DNA of 64,000 nt from Chlorokybus atmophyticus (taxonomy: Eukaryota > Plantae > Mesostigma and Chlorokybus algae): the NCBI GenBank assembly GCA_009103225.1, contig RHPI01003244.1, positions 186,001-250,000 on the forward strand, in the 5' to 3' direction. The position numbers and the translations under genes are program-made. Shown one piece after another: positions 1 through 10,169 of this stretch. The notes beneath the pieces are model-generated. The model was not told where the DNA came from. It did not search any database and was given only the letters and a program-made list of their open reading frames with translations. Numbering within the stretch: the first letter of the stretch is position 1; the number at the start of each line of letters is the position of its first letter.

Positions 1-216
1 GACGCGGCGTCCCCATCGCCGTCGCGCCTCCATCGCGACTCCATCGCCGTCGCGCCTCCATCGCCGTCACGCCTCCACCGCGACTCCATCGCCGTCGCGC
101 CTCCATCGCCGTCACGCCTCCATCAACGCCGCGCATGAACAAATCACGACCTAGCAACGCGATATCGCGTCCCCATCGCCGTCGCGCCTCCATCGCGCCT
201 CCACCGCGCCTCCATC
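1..216. repeat. GC-rich minisatellite of interleaved 17-bp (CCATCGCCGTCGCGCCT) and 11-bp (CCATCGCGACT/CCACCGCGCCT) units, truncated by window edge
   Basis: Units read directly at 13-122 and again at 171-216; GCGTCCCCATCGCCGTCGCGCCTCCATCGCG occurs at about 7 and about 166. Confidence 0.85.
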
Positions 217-877
217 GCCAAGGGTGCTGAATAAATCAAACGATAAAAGAACCGCGAACGCCGTGATATCGATATTCATTGGATGGACCAAATAAACCAC
301 CACCATCCAGTTGATTCAACGCCGCGTTCAGCCTCCATGCTAGTTAAGCGGAGAGGATCTAATGCAAAACAACTTTGAACAAACGAAGGGGAGGAAAGCG
401 TAAACTAAGCATTCAGTCAGCATGCACTCATCCACCAACGTGCTCGTGTACTCTTGTGCCTGCGCAATGCTGCTCATGCAAAAAAGTGTGCACCATCAGA
501 ACCATATTTCAGTGTTGAAAGGAGCTTACCCACGCAATGTTTGCTCAACAATGAAAATGCTACCAACGCTGACCCTTTCCGCCTAGGCCGCCCTACGACA
601 ATGGCAGTAGGTTACCAATGAGGTCAACAAGTCGGCGATGCCATTGCTGCGGTGGCACCTAAGCTTTAGTTAAGCTCAACTCGCAAAGTCAGCACACCAG
701 ACAAATGCTGCGCTCAGCACGTTGCACAAAGGTGTGCTGTCGCGTCCGTCCAAACTTCGTCACCCCCAACCGTGAATGTTCTCCCGGTTCAGTCGTCTCG
801 AACCGGGTTTCGTCAATATTCGTCGACAGAAGTGGTGATTTCGCCAAAGCAAACGTGACGCAGCTGAGAGGCAAGCC

Positions 878-3800
878 ATGGCGGCGGCGGCGGCAGCGGC
901 GGCGGCGGTTGGCGTGGGCCTGGCGAGCCGCACTGGGACAGGTGAGCAGTAGGAGGGTTTGGTTGCTTGTTGCGTGATAACTGGGAGCTTGACTTTTGCC
1001 GGGGCACCAATGCCGTTTCGCGGGAACGTGTCTGGCTGCCACGTTGCGAACCGGTCCATGCAAGTGGTCGTGTCATATTGCTGCGTGTCACATCGGTTAG
1101 TATGCTAGTCAGGAAACAAAGCACGTACATAAGATGGTGTAGTGTTGTTTCGTATGACTGTGCGGCAGCAGAGCTATCATACGAAAGAATGTCTGTTCAA
1201 CACATCTTTGCTGCTGCAGAGCTGTCAGACGATATATTTTGTTGAACAAGCCTTGCACTTTGTAGACGATGCTTACACAATGCGGCAATGTTGGTTTGCT
1301 CGCAACAGGAAGTTCCCTTCCCTCTACGCATGCTTCATCATCAACGTTTGGCGGTTGCAAGGTCTCAGATTTTACACGGAGCAAACAGCCTGGTGGCCCT
1401 CTCAGGTGAGCACAGCTGGAGTACTGCAGCTGCTTGTTTTGCATGAGGCCGGCAGCATCTCATTTGTTGTCAGTTGGTTTGCATTGCCACAAACCAGGAA
1501 AAGATCGTGTATGCTGTAACTGCTGGTAAGATAAACCCTGCACATTATGTGCCAGTCGCTGCCCGTATCGCGAATCCAATCAACAACTGCTGGTCAGGTT
1601 GTCAAGAGCAGCAGTGCCAGCTGTGGCTGCCGTCAGCACAGAGCACTCGTGGAGTCTTCTGAACACGCCGGATGAGTCGCTGCAGCAACAGGCCGCGCGT
1701 GACCTGTGGGCAGATAGTCAATCAGCGACGAGCACAGCCGACAGGTGAGTTTGTTGTCACAGAGACAAAGCACAGCTCGTTATCACGACTCTGGAGTGAA
1801 TGTTGCTAATGATGGATGACACAGTCGTGTGTCTCATACATTGCTGTTGTCCATGTAACAGAGATGATTTGGCCAACCATCCTGGCAGCAAACCCGTGCC
1901 ATCCACCAGTGACATCGCCCTGCTCCAAAAGCTTGCCGCCGAGCGCACTGACTTTCTTTATCAATTTGATCTGCCCAGAAGGAAATTTGCAATGCCAGGT
2001 ACAGGTCTCCTGTTCACTCCGGCGCAACAGTCCTGCATGGTAGAGGGTCATTGATTGAGCCATAATAGTACTTTCTCTTCTTCAGGGGTGCGTGGAGTAG
2101 ACCACATGGGTTTGACTGTGCCGGATTTGGCGGAAGCTATTGCTTTCTTTGTCGACGTACTTGGGTGCGAGGAATGCTTCGCTGTTGGCCCATTCAAAGC
2201 CTCTGACGACTGGATGCAAACACACCTGAATGTCCATCCAGCAGCACAGGTTGGTAATTCGTGTTATATGGGGCTCTGCTCATAGGGTGGTGCATATCGC
2301 CACTTGATCGCTCAGTATTGGTGTAGTGTCCTCTCAGTGCAGCTCTGTACGCAAGGCTATCACTAACTCCATTTCTAACACCACGGCAGATTGCACAGCT
2401 TCGCATGTTGCGCTGCGGAAACGGCAGCAACTTTGAGCTGTTTGAGTTTGTTGCTCCGGGCGAGCAGGTGCTTGTGTGTTTTTATATCTGTATAGACACA
2501 ATGGCATGCACGGCAGCAACCATATCCATGCTTGCTGCCATGTATGTCTTGTTGCCCATCTTGGGCTTGCAAACAGGATCCTGAGCCTCGTATAGCTGAC
2601 TGCGGCGGCAAGGCACCAACCTTCTTCGTTGACGACATTGACGAAGCTGTAGCACACCTCAAGTCTCGCGGCATCGAAGTGCTTGGAGACGTGATCACCA
2701 TGCAGGCTGGTCCAACAGCACCCAGGCCGGAAGTGAGTGCTGTTTGCTTGGTGGACAGTGATTGCCCATTGCCCGTTCGTCTGACTATGTGTGATGACGC
2801 GCAATGCTTGCGCAGGTGAAAGGTGTAAAAGGTTTGCAATTCATCTACTTCAAAGCTCCATGGGGACTACAGTTGAGGCTGTGCTCTTACACACCGGACA
2901 GCATGGCGTACGTGATCATCTTATTTGGCATGTATGACCAATTGGACCTGATTTACCATGCAGAATAACAACATATTGCTGCAGCTATCTTCACCAGCAT
3001 CCTGGTCAAGAGCTGCCAGTGGGTGGGAATATGAGTGCTGCAGGCCAGACGAAACTGCGCGTTCACAAGCTCAAAGAGGCATGTATATTGGCTGTGGTTC
3101 AGTCATTCAGTCATTGCATTGTTGTTTGCTTGTTGCTGAGCGCCAGCCAGTCGTTGCTGAGCAAAACTGCAGCACTGCAGCACTACGTGCTTCAGCCAAG
3201 CTGTAGTGATGGTTGTTTCGTGGGTCATGTAACGGATACAGTTTGGTACAGGGAAATATGCGCCAGTGGTGTCCGAAGCCGTTCCACAGCTACCAAAGTA
3301 GACGTGGCATCTTTCATACACTGCATCCCGAGGCAACAGGCATGATGATGCATGCATGTGCGCACAGACACATGGTCTGCTCTGATACCCCTATTGACCA
3401 ATCGCTGTGCCAGTCGTCACAAGTACACGCCTTGAACAATGTTATGGTGACTTGTCTACCAACCGTTTCTCTGTTGGGACGACAGGTGTGCAGGACTACA
3501 ACTGGGATTATGGTGGTAAGGATGTCAAAAACAGCCTGTTCTTCCAGTCCACACTGGATAACCTCAGGGCATACTGGCAGCCGCAGCACCCTGGCCAGGC
3601 TGGTGAGTCCTACAGCCAGCCAACTCTTGCTGCAGTAACACATACCAGTTGAACCTGCTGCAGACAGGTTTTTCACTTAAAGTTGGCAAGAACAGTCAGA
3701 CTCAGCGCTTGTGTGCTTGTGCCAACTCTAGAGGGTAGAGTGATCAACTCAAGTCTCGAGGTGGCCAACTTAGCGGAGAAGCGCGCTGATGAGCTTCACG

Positions 3801-5520
3801 AATTCCAGTTTCCGCTGCCGCCCACACCGCCCGTGCCCGGGTTGTGGGGCGTTGACAACTTCCTGTTGCAAGTGCCGGACATGGTGCAGGTGAGCACACC
3901 CCGACAATTGCATATTGTCGCCTAACGCTAGCAGCGCCTCTAATTTCATCGTGGCACTGCTAGTAGCGACATATAGCGTAGTGATGTCATGCGGCTTCTG
4001 CTGCTGCTGATACTAGCTCTCGCAGCCTGTCGTTGCTGTTGTTATCGCTCCTGTCATCGTTAGCAGCGGCAGCAGCAGACAGCTCAGCTGCCACCAGCAG
4101 CGGCGCTAGCCCAATAGTAGTGCTGTTGGGCTAGCGCCACTGCTGCTTGTGTTTAACAGTTTACTACTGGTAATACTGTCAATGGCAACAGCAGCCCGAC
4201 GTCGTCAACTGCTGCTGCTGTGTGGCTGCTGGCCATGCTGCCTCTGCCGGTAGTGGTGCTGGCCGCCACTAAAGCGGCTAGCAGTAGTGCATGAAATGGT
4301 GGTGGTACTGATATGGAAATCCATGTGAAGAAGTGGCACCCCGACGCTGCTGCATGTGGTCGGCTGCTGACATCACCACATCCAACACATGCTGAACTTG
4401 TGCTGACACGCTTGTATTGTGGCAACGGTGCAGGCGCTGGACTTCTTCATCAACGTCATGGGTTGCGAGCAGTGTTATGTAGAGGGTCCTTTCATGGCGG
4501 AGGACGACTTTATCCACAAGCAACTTGGCCTTCACCCACGCGCACAGGTGCATATAACTCTAGTACAATGAGGAGCATAGGATGGGTGCGTCTGGTTTTG
4601 TCCTGCCGTGAGTGCTCACAGGACAAAGGATACTCTTTTCACGCAGATTGTGCAAACTCGTCTGCTGCGCTGTCACACGGGCAGCAACATTCAGCTATTG
4701 GAATTCGCTTCCCCAGACCAAAATCAAAAATGGCCCTCTAACAGCGACATTGGCGGGTAGGGAAAGCAGGGAGATGTGGAATTGATGGTGTACAATGCAG
4801 CGCGCATTGCTTGTCGTGCATTCTCGCCACTGCTTCAAACCGAAACCAGTATGTGATGCTTAGACATAACTCTCTTCCTCAGGTACCATCTATGCTTCTT
4901 CGTTGATGACATCCATGTTGCGTGCGACTTCCTCAAGGCTCGCGGCATTACGATTTTGGGAGAAGTCACTACTATGCAGGCCGGCCCAACTGGTACAGCT
5001 GCTCGGTGCGGGAAGTAGTTGTTGTTGCAATCTACTTGTGGGAGTGACAACTGTTGTTTGCGCAGGACCTCGACCAGAATTCCCAGAAGCGCAAGGTATG
5101 TACACAACATCACACTGGGTTTACAAACTCGCATCGTTCTATGCCCAGTCGTAACCCCTCCGCTCCAACAAGGTCATACTTTGAATCCTCATTTTCAGGT
5201 TTGCAATGGCTTTACTTTTTTACTCCTTGGGGTGCTCAGGTACATTTGCTGCCATGTCGAGACCCTCTATTGATTGCATATCAATGGAGTGTGCCATGTG
5301 TGACTGCCAGTATGACAAGCTGTGATGCCTGTTTTATCAAGTTGTGCTTTGCGCGTGTCTGCAGATGGAGCTGTGCACATATGGGCCAGATGGAATGGCG
5401 TACTTGCATCAGAGCGGAGGTTACGAAGGGCAGGGCGGCAAGTCTGGAATTTCAGGGATCCGCTCGCACGTGTTAAAGCTTGGGAATGTACGCCAGTGGT
5501 GTCCGAAGCCATTCTGGTGA
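878..5520 (+). CDS. Tandem (two-domain) VOC/glyoxalase-bleomycin-resistance-fold protein with probable plastid transit peptide; about 18 exons
   Basis: Phase-consistent splicing from ATG 878. The Ala/Ser/Arg-rich N-terminus is [33 protein letters not shown]...LRLSRAAVPAVAA. Domain 1: GVRGVDHMGLTVPDLAEAIAFFVDVLGCEEC...LRCGNGSNFELFEF...FFVDDIDEAVAHLKSRGIEVLG...FIYFKAPWGLQLRLCSY (2086-2912). Domain 2: GLWGVDNFLLQVPDMVQALDFFINVMGCEQC...LRCHTGSNIQLLEF...SDIGGYHLCFFVDD...WLYFFTPWGAQMELCTY (3840-5390). Both repeats end in GNxRQWCPKPF; stop TGA at 5518-5520. Confidence 0.85.
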
Positions 5521-6482
5521 CGACTGTTTGGGTGTTGCGAGGTGGTGGCCTAGTATGCCATTCCATGTGGTCTGCAGTGTTGGTTGGTGAGGTTGACTTT
5601 AGCCAAAGACTTGAACCGTTGTTGTCTTGCTGCTTTCTGGGGTCCATTGGAAGGTGATGATGATCCTGATCCTGGTGGGATTGGAAGGTAACTGTGCAAT
5701 GCAAGGCAAGTTTGCTGCCACTGGCCCCCACCCTGGCATGGTCGCCAGCGCCGCAGTGTCAAACTTCATCACAGCCAGCGCTGGTCTCATTGCAGGGTGC
5801 AGGCCCCAGACTGAAATGCATGCCCTATAACTGCCTAGACTATCCTGTACATTAGCTGCGCGGCTGCATACCCTGCAAGGCAGCCGCCCGACGCGCGAAT
5901 GTAATGAATGCAATGCGCTGCTCCAGTTGCCCAGCGTCCCATGGGGCTGCTGTTGCCCCAAGTCCAAGGCACCCACGCCCGCCTGCGCTTGCACATATCT
6001 ATGCGCGTGGACAGCGACAGCTGGCTATGGAAGCAGAACAAACCGGCCACAGCCTCTCAACCCACCCTGCCCACTCTACTCTCACATTAGCTAGCTGCTT
6101 AGCTAGGGGCAATGGCAAAACAGCAGCAATAGCATGCAACTATCTGCAGAAGCAGTACGAGCGGCAGCAGCTTAATTACTTGCAGTGCAGGGAGTATACC
6201 AAGCTGTTGGTCTCTCTTAGCGCCCCGCACAAATTTCACTCTACTCAAGTTACGCTCTTGAAGCACAATATGTGTTGCTACTTATGTTCATAGGGGTTGT
6301 GGTAGGACGTACGGCGCCGGCGCATCACAACCTCATGTTTACACATAATGATGTGCAAAGACCGAATCAAGTAGACCGTGCAAGACTTGACCACCTGCTT
6401 CAAGCAACATAGTGTAAAGAATAACAGTTTCAACAGCGTAAATGGTGCCTCGTTGCACATATCCGCGCGAAGAGGGGGGGGG

Positions 6483-6708
6483 NNNNNNNNNNNNNNNNNN
6501 NNNNNNNNNNNNNNNNNNNNNNNNNNNNNNNNNNNNNNNNNNNNNNNNNNNNNNNNNNNNNNNNNNNNNNNNNNNNNNNNNNNNNNNNNNNNNNNNNNNN
6601 NNNNNNNNNNNNNNNNNNNNNNNNNNNNNNNNNNNNNNNNNNNNNNNNNNNNNNNNNNNNNNNNNNNNNNNNNNNNNNNNNNNNNNNNNNNNNNNNNNNN
6701 NNNNNNNN
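6483..6708. other. Assembly gap (N run) flanked by G homopolymers
   Basis: N bases in the sequence. Confidence 1.
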
Positions 6709-7543
6709 GGGGGCTACGTAGGGGCTACCGGTATCAGGCGTCATTTTCATAGATGGGGGGGAATACTATTATGTGGCATTGGTGATCGCCAAGTACAATT
6801 TATTCAAAGAGATCCACCTCATAGTGGGCATCGCGAGACTACAAAACCTACTATTGTCGTGCGTATATTCCCTACCAAGCAATGTTTACGGCGGAAAAAC
6901 CTTCCTCATGAGTTGAGACAGCAAACACATCTCAAATAAGGTTTGCTTGCTTGGTCAGCTACCGTTTCTCCTTTCCTCCTTTGCCCTTTTTCCCACCAAC
7001 ATGTCAAGGGCACCATACACAAAGAGACATAATATAGTTCAACACAATACCACTATGGGGCTCTCCAAGAAGTATTAGGGGGTTGTGTGTTTCCTGATAA
7101 CACTGTGCTTTCTGAGAAGACCGTACACTGTCATTGTCACAATGCACGGTTGGTGACGGTCATCAAATCTCCTCATCGCTTTGGGATGCCAGCAACTCAT
7201 TACAATCAACACTGCTAACGCCAACTACGCTTCACGTTTGAACCCTCGTCGTCTACTTTTGCATCCATGCATGTGCGCATGCGTGAAGCTCGGGTGTGTT
7301 TTTACATTATTACAGTAACACTATCTAAACGTGTACACTACCCGCCGGGACACGTTAGCAGTATGAACACTATCGGGTAGTACCTGGTAGTGTTCATACT
7401 GCTACATAAGACATTACACTCACAGGCAGCAGATGCCACACCTTCTTTCGCTGGTGCTTCCGTTTTGAGAACGTAGTAGACCTCATTACGTAACTTTGTA
7501 CTTATTGACGAGCACGCTGATAGTTACGATGAGTTACCGTAGT

Positions 7544-7880
7544 TGTCAGGAGGGGAGTGCACCTCCTCCCTCTAATTTCCTACCCCAACACCACCACCAG
7601 CCACGCCGACCACACCGCCGCCGCCGCCGGGGCAGCTGCCAGAGCCGAATATCCTCTGGCTATGGCGAATGCTGTGTTAGCAGCGCCGCCATACGGCTGA
7701 TATCGGCATGAGACTCATGTCTCATGCCGATATCAATGTTAAAGATAAGTAACACTACATTAGGGCCTTAACACTAGGTTAACGGCCCTAATACGGCTCA
7801 ATTGGCTGTTTACCCGCTGGGACCCTTAATTAATCCTAAATAAGGGCGGGGAACCTCTATGCGGGTAGCACTCCGTTACA
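7544..7880 (-). repeat. 3' LTR of Gypsy element 1 (337 bp)
   Basis: TGTCAGGAGG...CCGTTACA; collinear with 14764-15118, roughly 80-90% identical by eye. Confidence 0.93.
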
Positions 7881-7890
7881 TTCCCCCCAC
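7881..7890 (-). promoter_or_regulatory. Polypurine tract (GTGGGGGGAA on minus strand)
   Basis: Directly precedes the 3' LTR start TGTAACGG on the minus strand. Confidence 0.85.
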
Positions 7891-10169
7891 TTGGGTTTCG
7901 TTGTCTTTACTAAAGGGTTAGCAAAGCCCCACTACGAGCACTGAAAAGAAAAGCAGTGAGAGATTCAGGGCCGAAGCGGTAAAAAACGTCTGCCAGCACC
8001 CTTTTGCCGTCCGCGTGTGGACACAGCACTCCAATACCTCGAAAAATCTCCTGGCAATCCGCAAGAAGCTTCCTTTCTCGGCTCCCATGTGTTGTGCTCA
8101 ACACCATACCCTTTCCATTTCACCAAGTAGAACGACGCGCATCCGCGTCGAGGCTGATGGTGACTCGGGGTTGCTTCCACCTTATACTCAAAAGTATCGT
8201 CGCCACTGCACCCGGGGGTGGAGGAGGTTGAACCCGACTGTCAGAATGGTATGGTTTCAGTACACTCTTATGAAACACATTGTGCGTATCGACTTTGGCA
8301 AGTTTAAACGATGCGCGCGAGTGCCGACCTTAATCACTTTAATAGGGAAATTTACGGATACCCACTCCCTTAATGGATATGTTTTTGGTACTCAGAAGTA
8401 CCAAACAGCCCATATCGTAGTTGGCCTCTCTACGATGTGCATCAGCTTGGGCCTTTTGTCTGTCTTGCACTGCGCGCAGACAGTTGGTCCTTTGCTAATG
8501 CTAACCTATCCCGCATGGCCGAAGCCATCTCGCGCGCTGCAGGTATGCGAGTTATGTCAATAGCGGGCAACTTAATGTTTGCAGGACTTAGTGGATGCAC
8601 TCCGTAACATAAGAAAAACGGAGTTTCCTGCACACTCTCTTGCCATGCATTATTGATTGTGAACTCGGATGGTTTCCTCAACCACTTGATTGGCGCTTCC
8701 TGTCTGACCATCTGTTTGCGGATGGTAAGCTGTGCTCATGTTCTGTTGAATCTGTAAGAAGCTGCATAGCGACTTTCAGAACTGAGCTACAAAACACGGA
8801 TCGCAATCAGACACAAAATTGCGAGGTAAGGCATGCAACTTGAACACAGACGCAACAATAACTATCGTCAACTCACGGGAACCTATTTCCGTGCAACAAG
8901 GGACAATGTGAACCATTTTTGTTAAACGGTCCACAAAAACCGCAATGTGACCTTATGTTGTTTGTGGGAGCTCTGTAGTAAAGTCCATACTCACACTTTC
9001 CCATTTGCCATCACGAACAGGCAATGGTCGCAGCAACTTAGTGGGTTTCTGACGTAACGGCTTGTCATGCGTGCTTACATTTGTCACACGTGTCTACATA
9101 CCGCTTTACGTCAACAGGCAACGATGGCCACCAATACAACTATTGCGCTGCCTTAACAATCTTGCGACTGCCAAAGTGCCCAGCGTATGGTGGATCGTGT
9201 GCATCAGCTATGCATTGTACACGCAACTCAGCATGGTTTGGTATGACCAAACAGGTGCCCATATAATACATGTTGTCCCGTTTGTCAAGCTTTTGCACAT
9301 TGTCCTCGGACGAGAACCATGGGTCAAAAGCATACCCTTGCACAACAGCTTGCACAAACTCATCATTAGGTGGCAATGTACCGCGCGTTGCAAGCAAGTG
9401 TGCACGCATGACCGCTAGCAATGACGGACATTGACTCACAGAATCAGCGACATTGGCTTGCTTGGCCGGTGTACTAACTCAAAAGTAAACCGGGAAAGAA
9501 ATTGTATCTAGCAAGCTTGCTTTCGTGACAAGTCTTGCTACTTTAAGAGATACACCAATGGATTATGATCAATCACCACTGTGAACTGAACCCCTTCTTG
9601 GTAACATCGCCATGTTTCCAGCGCATGTACTATACGAAGCAACTCTTGCTCAGTGGTAGTGTAGTTCACCTCTGCTGGCATACTACTCTCATAAGCACAT
9701 GGTCTGCCATCTTGCAACAGAACTGCACCACATCAAAGGGTGGACGCATCGCTGACCACAGTAAAATGCTTGTCCCAATTCGGCAATGCCAACCGTTGTG
9801 ACACTGGAGCTGAAGTTAAAGCTAGCTTCACCTGTTGCGTAGCAGCTTTTTGTTCATTGAACGGCTGGCAGCCGTCGACATGAATGCAGCATCTTTTTGC
9901 AACAGTTTTAATAAAGGCACCAATATTGTGGAATTCCCCATCATAAACTTGAAAAAGTAGTTTGCCAATTTTAAAAATGATCGCAGTTGATGAATATTTT
10001 GAGGTTGAGGCCAATCCACTACAGCTTGCACTTTGCGAGGGTCAGGTCTAACACTCGCACCGCTCACAATGTGCCCCATAAATGGCATCTCCGTCTTGCA
10101 AAATCATTTTGCAAAATTGGCAAACAAGCGATGTTTACGCAGCAAGGCAAACACCGCTTCCAAGTGCTA

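Follow-up and report, generated by a model that had tools for sequence, protein, structure and literature searches.

We analyzed a stretch of 64,000 nucleotides from the alga Chlorokybus atmophyticus (GenBank assembly GCA_009103225.1, contig RHPI01003244.1, positions 186,001 to 250,000 of the forward strand). This whole stretch is referred to as the window, and positions are counted from its first letter. Near its left end lies an expressed gene for a protein in which two VOC domains, here called D1 and D2, are fused in tandem. A preliminary description of the locus, made from the letters alone, had proposed that the two domains lost their metal ligands reciprocally after duplication and fusion, leaving one live and one dead active site. 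That proposal is now well supported, if indirectly, by the relatives of the gene and by structural models of two of them.

Gene structure and expression

The coding region, as read from open frames, splice signals and transcript contigs, comprises 18 exons on the forward strand from the ATG at 878 to the TGA at 5518-5520, and encodes 650 amino acids (Table 1). Exon borders were first drawn from the reading frames and splice signals, and contigs of four public transcript runs were then aligned to window positions 300-6100 (5801 letters). Two of these runs, X1 and X2, stem from separate studies and contain 0.43 and 0.37 of the sampled words, approximately the share expected from the exons alone. 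Sixteen of the 17 introns are seen as joints in the contigs of these two runs, and the seventeenth (1999-2085) was deduced from adjoining pieces of X2 record 5. The D1-D2 junction is spanned in a single open frame by X2 record 5 (1592 nucleotides) and X1 record 2 (2043 nucleotides), and therefore the two domains belong to one gene, one transcript and one reading frame.

The splicing is thus borne out by transcript contigs of two studies. The gene extent of 2086-5520 given in the preliminary description needs correcting at the start, which is at the ATG four exons further upstream. The four exons that it missed encode a presequence and the N-terminal extension of repeat 1. The presequence shows no VOC similarity and no similarity to any relative found; by analogy, it is probably an organelle-targeting peptide.

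Ligand positions in the two repeats

D1 and D2 are 48% identical over 247 aligned residues (BLASTP, E 3e-82). The ancestral pattern of the family at the four metal-ligand positions is H-E-H-E in each domain. In the algal protein, repeat 1 has H,E,A,R and repeat 2 has N,Q,H,E; all eight codons fall, in the spliced frame, where the preliminary description had placed them, with the same ligands kept and lost. Each repeat has an N-half and a C-half (D1-N, D1-C, D2-N and D2-C, which are the first to fourth modules of the chain). If the halves pair between domains, the four retained ligands would all belong to one site (site A, D1-N with D2-C) and the four replaced ones to the other (site B, D2-N with D1-C). 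For a random loss of four of the eight ligands, only 2 of the 70 arrangements would strip one inter-domain site completely while sparing the other. The N-halves differ in conservation as well: D1-N retains 27 of 28 family-conserved columns versus 18 of 28 in D2-N (Fisher p 0.005).

Family membership and relatives

To place the protein, it was searched exon by exon, and the joined sequence was compared locally with the relatives. In the exon-wise Pfam scan, exon 2088-2249 alone matched PF00903 with 22.7 bits (cut-off 20.6), while exons 2577-2732 and 4884-4991 gave VOC matches under the curated cut-off (PF00903 and PF13669 for 4884-4991). Sequence searches of the PDB by exon gave weak VOC matches. 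A profile of two C-half exons, run against 1.84 billion representatives, retrieved 148 proteins; three of the matches (P0066, P0090 and P0093) were rejected as repeat-protein false positives. PF00903 and PF13669 are present in all relatives, which match the gene model with up to 222 bits (phmmer) and at most 54% identity.

The relatives comprise single-domain proteins of ~180-200 residues and fused proteins with two domains and ~300-400 residues. Their source labels include "VOC family protein", with a few labeled "2-epi-5-epi-valiolone epimerase", and the named organisms are Streptomyces and other actinobacteria, Gaiellaceae, Burkholderiales and Sphingomonadaceae. They share the motifs PG-x-R-G-x-D-H at the start, N-x-E-L-F-E, NSD-x-GG-H-H, P-W-G-x-x-x-E-L and a tail AY...R-LW-x-P, and in the alignment these motifs are nearly intact in the algal D1-N and D2-C. 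Two known families were considered and rejected. The glyoxalase I model TIGR00068 scored 24-41 bits on the closest relatives (cut-off 120; the algal protein was scanned exon-wise), and the model TIGR03081 for methylmalonyl-CoA epimerase (MMCE) scored 35-68 bits on the relatives (cut-off 115). No curated NCBIfam model attained its cut-off on the bacterial relatives. By sequence, the algal protein is best placed in an uncharacterised bacterial-type VOC subfamily (P0006 / P0001 / P0035 type) that is neither glyoxalase I nor MMCE.

No algal orthologue was present among the 148 matches in the representative library, none of which carries the algal inserts described below, or in two metagenome scans. 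A word search with a mixed alignment gave only actinobacterial proteins among the best 120 of its 2139 matches.

Several of the bacterial relatives (P0006, P0019, P0035) have an export-like signal at the N-terminus. For instance, P0006 has a hydrophobic leader with an AHA end, and P0035 has a twin-arginine-like RRTFL. These leaders suggest that the bacterial subfamily may often act outside the cytoplasm.

Fate of the ligands in fused relatives

To see what became of the ligands elsewhere in the subfamily, both halves of 230 fused proteins were aligned to the family profile. Both composite sites read H-E-H-E in 155 of the 230 proteins. Site A is intact and site B changed in 68, the reverse holds in 3, and the remaining 4 are in other states. 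Thirty-one fused proteins are altered in both domains, and in 25 of them every change lies within site B. For instance, P0134 reads H,E,E,G / R,Q,H,E and P0445 reads H,E,L,L / F,V,H,E. If each domain formed its own site, both sites would be crippled in these 25 proteins, so the pattern is unexpected under that topology. At least 14 changes of site state are required on a FastTree phylogeny built from 216 bacterial fused proteins. The algal pattern is thus, in these alignments, a common outcome of the subfamily, and the alga arrived at it independently.

The losses are directional: the site made of the first and fourth modules was kept alone 68 times, versus 3 times for the site made of the second and third modules. 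The linker may handicap the inner site.

Site topology in homologue models

The topology of the sites was taken from the alignment ranges of homologue models against known structures. The AlphaFold2 (AF2) model of P0023 (H,E,Y,A / G,E,H,E; 57 fused sequences) had a predicted local distance difference test score (pLDDT) of 89.1 and a predicted template modelling score (pTM) of 0.90. The AF2 model of P0035, which was fused independently, had values of 89.4 and 0.87. Each model has four beta-alpha-beta-beta-beta modules, and against VOC structures Z reaches 23.8. Over the whole chain, the two models match maize GLX1 (5d7z) at Z 23.0 over 268 residues and Z 23.8 over 270 residues; both also match PcpA, GLOD4 and 1zsw. 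The extradiol dioxygenases and HPPD, whose sites are intra-domain, superpose over the whole chain only at template modelling (TM) scores of 0.25-0.30.

The matches to smaller proteins indicate which modules pair. MMCE chains (~130 residues, Z ~13) align to 15..344 and 44..381, that is, to the first and fourth modules, and a 3gm5 chain aligns to 129..305, the second and third modules. A 1ss4 chain aligns to one contiguous D1 (14..167 and 50..199). MMCE chains thus span D1-N plus D2-C, and a cleft closed within a single domain, as in MMCE itself, was not found. The homologue models and the family ligand pattern instead show a glyoxalase-I-like arrangement, in which a site joins an N-half and a C-half from different domains; this likeness is one of working mode and not of membership. 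On these models, the subfamily is predicted to form two inter-domain clefts, site A from D1-N and D2-C and site B from D2-N and D1-C. The D1-N/D2-C site that the preliminary description had taken to be the retained one finds support here, since the homologue models pair these modules and the same ligand set is kept across the fused relatives. One live and one dead site in the algal protein are therefore well supported on model grounds, although indirectly.

Origin of the fused gene

In a tree of single domains, the algal D1 and D2 are sisters (Shimodaira-Hasegawa approximate likelihood-ratio test, SH-aLRT, 88) and are placed among single-domain proteins (P0006, P0019). Three insertions are common to both repeats and absent from all bacterial relatives aligned: an N-terminal extension of ~40 residues (HPG...QF-LP), 9 residues inserted in the loop that follows GPT and 27 residues inserted in the C-terminal tail. 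One intron position is also common to both repeats (phase 0, after HP-x-AQ), and the other intron positions differ. Because the repeats are sisters and share three insertions without bacterial counterpart, the duplication and fusion must have occurred in the algal lineage, after the inserts arose, and the duplication is old. The preliminary description had assumed a whole-gene duplication and fusion, with which the sister repeats and their common insertions agree. In the domain tree, the fusions of Streptomyces type, of Gaiellaceae type, of P0055 and of P0002 have separate origins.

The extensions shared by the repeats had also been proposed to be a new accessory module. The ~40-residue extension and the two inserts are indeed lineage-specific. 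The segment GNxRQWCPKPF is not: it corresponds to the C-terminal tail of the family, R-LW-N/H-P, with the 27-residue insert placed before it. Likewise, the PG ahead of the first strand is a motif of the family.

The gene may be of bacterial ancestry, since the relatives nearest to it in sequence are bacterial (at most 54% identity) and no algal orthologue was found. If this origin is true, the gene has gained 17 introns, a presequence and a tandem duplication since its acquisition.

Comparison with known systems

A fused chain with a single working site has precedents. In the plant monomeric glyoxalase I enzymes ZmGLX1 of maize and OsGLYI-11.2 of rice, there are two lateral clefts, one functional and one cryptic (PMC5412262), and the two-domain Ni-glyoxalase I is general in eukaryotes, algae included (PMC3826101). 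The algal protein resembles ZmGLX1 in having two VOC domains per chain and, as predicted, one working site, and ZmGLX1 is the best whole-chain match of both homologue models. However, the algal core is longer (~165 versus ~120 residues), the identity in the structural alignment is 17%, and ZmGLX1 is absent from the P0006 sequence search at E <= 0.01. There is no evidence of glutathione use in the algal protein.

PcpA, the 2,6-dichlorohydroquinone 1,2-dioxygenase, is a chain of four modules whose single Fe site combines His11 of the first module with His227/Glu276 of the last one (PMC3204407). The homologue models share the four modules in one chain with PcpA (4huz, Z 21.8-23.7), which differs in its three-ligand Fe(II) dioxygenase site and has 12-14% identity. 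MMCE (1jc5, 6wf6) is the closest solved structure by sequence and has a four-ligand metal chemistry with proton transfer, but its cleft lies inside one 145-residue chain.

The bacterial fused members are the nearest counterparts. They include P0023, P0134 and P0458 from Streptomyces and other actinobacteria, and P0035 from Gaiellaceae-like metagenome contigs. They are 45-50% identical to the algal domains, have the same two-domain layout and, in 68 of 229 bacterial proteins, keep and lose the same sites as the alga (D1-N with D2-C kept); the ligand pattern of P0134 comes near the algal one. They differ in being independent fusions of 300-400 residues without the algal inserts and without introns, and most of them lost just 1-3 of the site B ligands.

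A further comparison is ValD, the 2-epi-5-epi-valiolone epimerase of validamycin biosynthesis, which the title of its report describes as a large VOC superfamily protein (Xu et al. 2009, Chem Biol 16:567; cited in PMC7081202). A link to enzymes of the ValD/CetB type may be suggested by the source labels of several relatives and by the DHQ-synthase-like neighbour of P0001. Mutagenesis of ValD reportedly points to N-terminal His44/Glu107 and C-terminal His315/Glu366, with spacings of 63 and 51; these match the ligand spacings in the family of the algal protein, which are 64 and 51 without the algal insert.

Proposed mechanism and alternatives

Taken as a whole, the data are, we judge, quite probably best explained by a targeted pseudo-dimer with a live site A, a dead site B and one metal per chain, likely an isomerase or epimerase. 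A tandem duplication of one bacterial-type VOC domain in the algal lineage would have given a fused chain with two clefts. Site B would then have lost all four ligands (now Asn, Gln, Ala and Arg) while its N-module drifted from the family consensus, and it would persist mainly as a structural remnant. Site A would keep the full set of His155, Glu219, His541 and Glu601 and presumably bind one divalent metal. By analogy with Escherichia coli glyoxalase I and MMCE, both established VOC enzymes with four ligands, the substrate would be chelated to the metal through two adjacent oxygens, and a ligand glutamate would shift a proton. This points to an isomerase or epimerase-type VOC enzyme as the most likely reading.

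Several points weigh against this explanation. The convergence of the four ligands rests on bacterial homologues (45-54% identity) and on alignment ranges rather than distances. The C-modules have no clear asymmetry, with 22 of 30 family-conserved columns in D1-C and 24 of 30 in D2-C (p 0.76), and the sister branch of D1 and D2 does not receive strong support from the tree alone. No algal orthologue that would show the pattern to be conserved within algae was found in the representative-library and metagenome searches. Finally, the chemistry is assigned by analogy, and the gene neighbourhoods of the bacterial relatives are heterogeneous. For instance, P0001 has a DHQ-synthase-like cyclase, cupins and dehydrogenases as neighbours, and the cluster of P0006 resembles a hydroquinone pathway, with PnpD-like, aldehyde dehydrogenase, CoA-transferase and iron-dependent alcohol dehydrogenase (Fe-ADH) genes. 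Single-domain relatives (loci L006-L012; P0314, P0324, P0336) repeatedly adjoin genes for thiamine pyrophosphate (TPP)-dependent E1 dehydrogenases, and the same relatives have an EthD gene upstream or a fused muconolactone-isomerase domain. This association of VOC with TPP-dependent E1 dehydrogenase and EthD is possibly a conserved functional partnership. No partner genes of the bacterial relatives, including cyclitol-pathway genes, occur within the algal window.

These neighbourhoods bear on one alternative, in which site A is live but belongs to an oxygen-using ring-cleavage dioxygenase or lyase instead of an isomerase or epimerase. The hydroquinone dioxygenase PcpA is among the whole-chain structural matches, the closest single-domain relative, P0006, lies in the hydroquinone-pathway-like cluster, and muconolactone isomerase is fused to some relatives. 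Nonetheless, this chemistry, though a serious rival, appears unlikely. VOC dioxygenases use a 2His-1Glu set, whereas site A has the four-ligand 2His-2Glu set, which is the pattern of glyoxalase I and MMCE. Moreover, several fused relatives are labeled 2-epi-5-epi-valiolone epimerase at their source, and P0001 adjoins the DHQ-synthase-like cyclase.

The preliminary description had suggested a regulatory or ligand-binding role for the emptied pocket. That the D2-N/D1-C pocket is a selected ligand-binding or allosteric site, working with the alga-specific N-extension and inserts, seems to us decidedly unlikely. If true, the alga would have a single-site enzyme under regulation, whose gene came from a bacterial VOC gene by horizontal transfer and so far lacks an orthologue in any other eukaryote.

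In another alternative, each domain closes its own intra-domain cleft as in MMCE. Both sites, reading H,E,A,R in D1 and N,Q,H,E in D2, would then be crippled, leaving a binder or scaffold without catalytic activity. Among solved structures, the one nearest in sequence to a single-domain relative is indeed an MMCE with an intra-chain site (1jc4, E 1e-5), and the ~90-residue linker between D1 and D2 would permit either topology. We nevertheless regard this topology as very improbable, given that D1-N is paired with D2-C in both homologue models and that 25 of the 31 doubly changed fused relatives confine their changes to one inter-domain site and keep the other as H-E-H-E. The match of 1ss4 to a contiguous D1 shows an open chain fold compatible with swapping, which also speaks against it. 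An artefactual fusion, by mis-assembly or from two adjacent genes, is a general risk only (the nearby assembly gap lies outside the gene) and can be treated as negligible, as X2 record 5 and X1 record 2, from two studies, traverse the D1-D2 junction in one open frame.

Other features of the gene and the window

Table 1. Coordinates of the fused VOC gene and its parts within the window
Feature	Position	Strand	Remarks
Exons, first nine	878-941, 1309-1405, 1598-1744, 1862-1998, 2086-2249, 2390-2467, 2577-2732, 2816-2907, 2985-3078	+	
Exons, last nine	3252-3339, 3486-3602, 3732-3889, 4434-4547, 4647-4756, 4883-4992, 5066-5095, 5199-5239, 5365-5520	+	
N-terminal presequence, residues 1 to ~66	878-1634	+	Ala/Ser/Arg-rich, poly-Ala run at start
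Repeat 1 (D1), residues 109-355	1878-3287	+	N-extension, VOC core 147-313 (MPG...MAY), C-tail with terminal RQWCPKPF; BLASTP D1 against D2
Repeat 2 (D2), residues 407-650	3587-5517	+	D1-like layout, VOC core 446-612; BLASTP D1 against D2
His155	2103-2105	+	D1 ligand 1, kept, site A
Glu219	2435-2437	+	D1 ligand 2, kept, site A
Ala242	2613-2615	+	D1 ligand-3 position, lost (family His), site B
Arg302	2876-2878	+	D1 ligand-4 position, lost (family Glu), site B
Asn454	3857-3859	+	D2 ligand-1 position, lost (family His), site B
Gln518	4692-4694	+	D2 ligand-2 position, lost (family Glu), site B
His541	4887-4889	+	D2 ligand 3, kept, site A
Glu601	5368-5370	+	D2 ligand 4, kept, site A
GC-AG intron, starts GCATGT	3079-3251	+	In D1 C-tail; joint 3076->3250, 3 ambiguous letters, X1 and X2
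GC-AG intron, starts GCATGA	3340-3485	+	In D1-D2 linker; joint 3335->3482, 5 ambiguous letters, X1 and X2
3' untranslated region	5521-6100	+	To 6100 at least; X1 record 2 unbroken 5362-6100

Two of the 17 introns are of the GC-AG type. Both open with GCATG, and both are backed by contigs of the two studies. The largest intron (3890-4433, 544 nucleotides) occurs in repeat 2 only, is rich in GCT/CAG runs and contains a near-perfect 23-nucleotide hairpin at 4095-4145; this intron may represent an inserted element. At position 1902, X1 has C where the window and X2 have T. The C would replace Ser115 by Pro in the N-extension, which is not conserved, and probably reflects a difference between strains or alleles.

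A run of N, marking the assembly gap at 6483-6708, lies ~1 kb 3' of the stop codon and accounts for the low G+C in the profile at 6501-7000. Tandem repeats with periods of 45, 17 and 11 (CCATCGCCGTC... units) occupy positions 13-218 at the left edge of the window. No second VOC copy was found within the window, and Rfam gave no match in window positions 1-9000.

Significance

The loss of one site after fusion is a known principle and the usual fate of fused members, and the algal gene opens no new mechanism. It is an independently evolved case in an unstudied subfamily. Fusion of a VOC homodimer into a single chain makes one interface site dispensable, and the algal gene offers a clean eukaryotic example. 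The bias toward the outer site, seen across the 230 fused proteins, may aid the annotation of two-domain VOC proteins and protein engineering.

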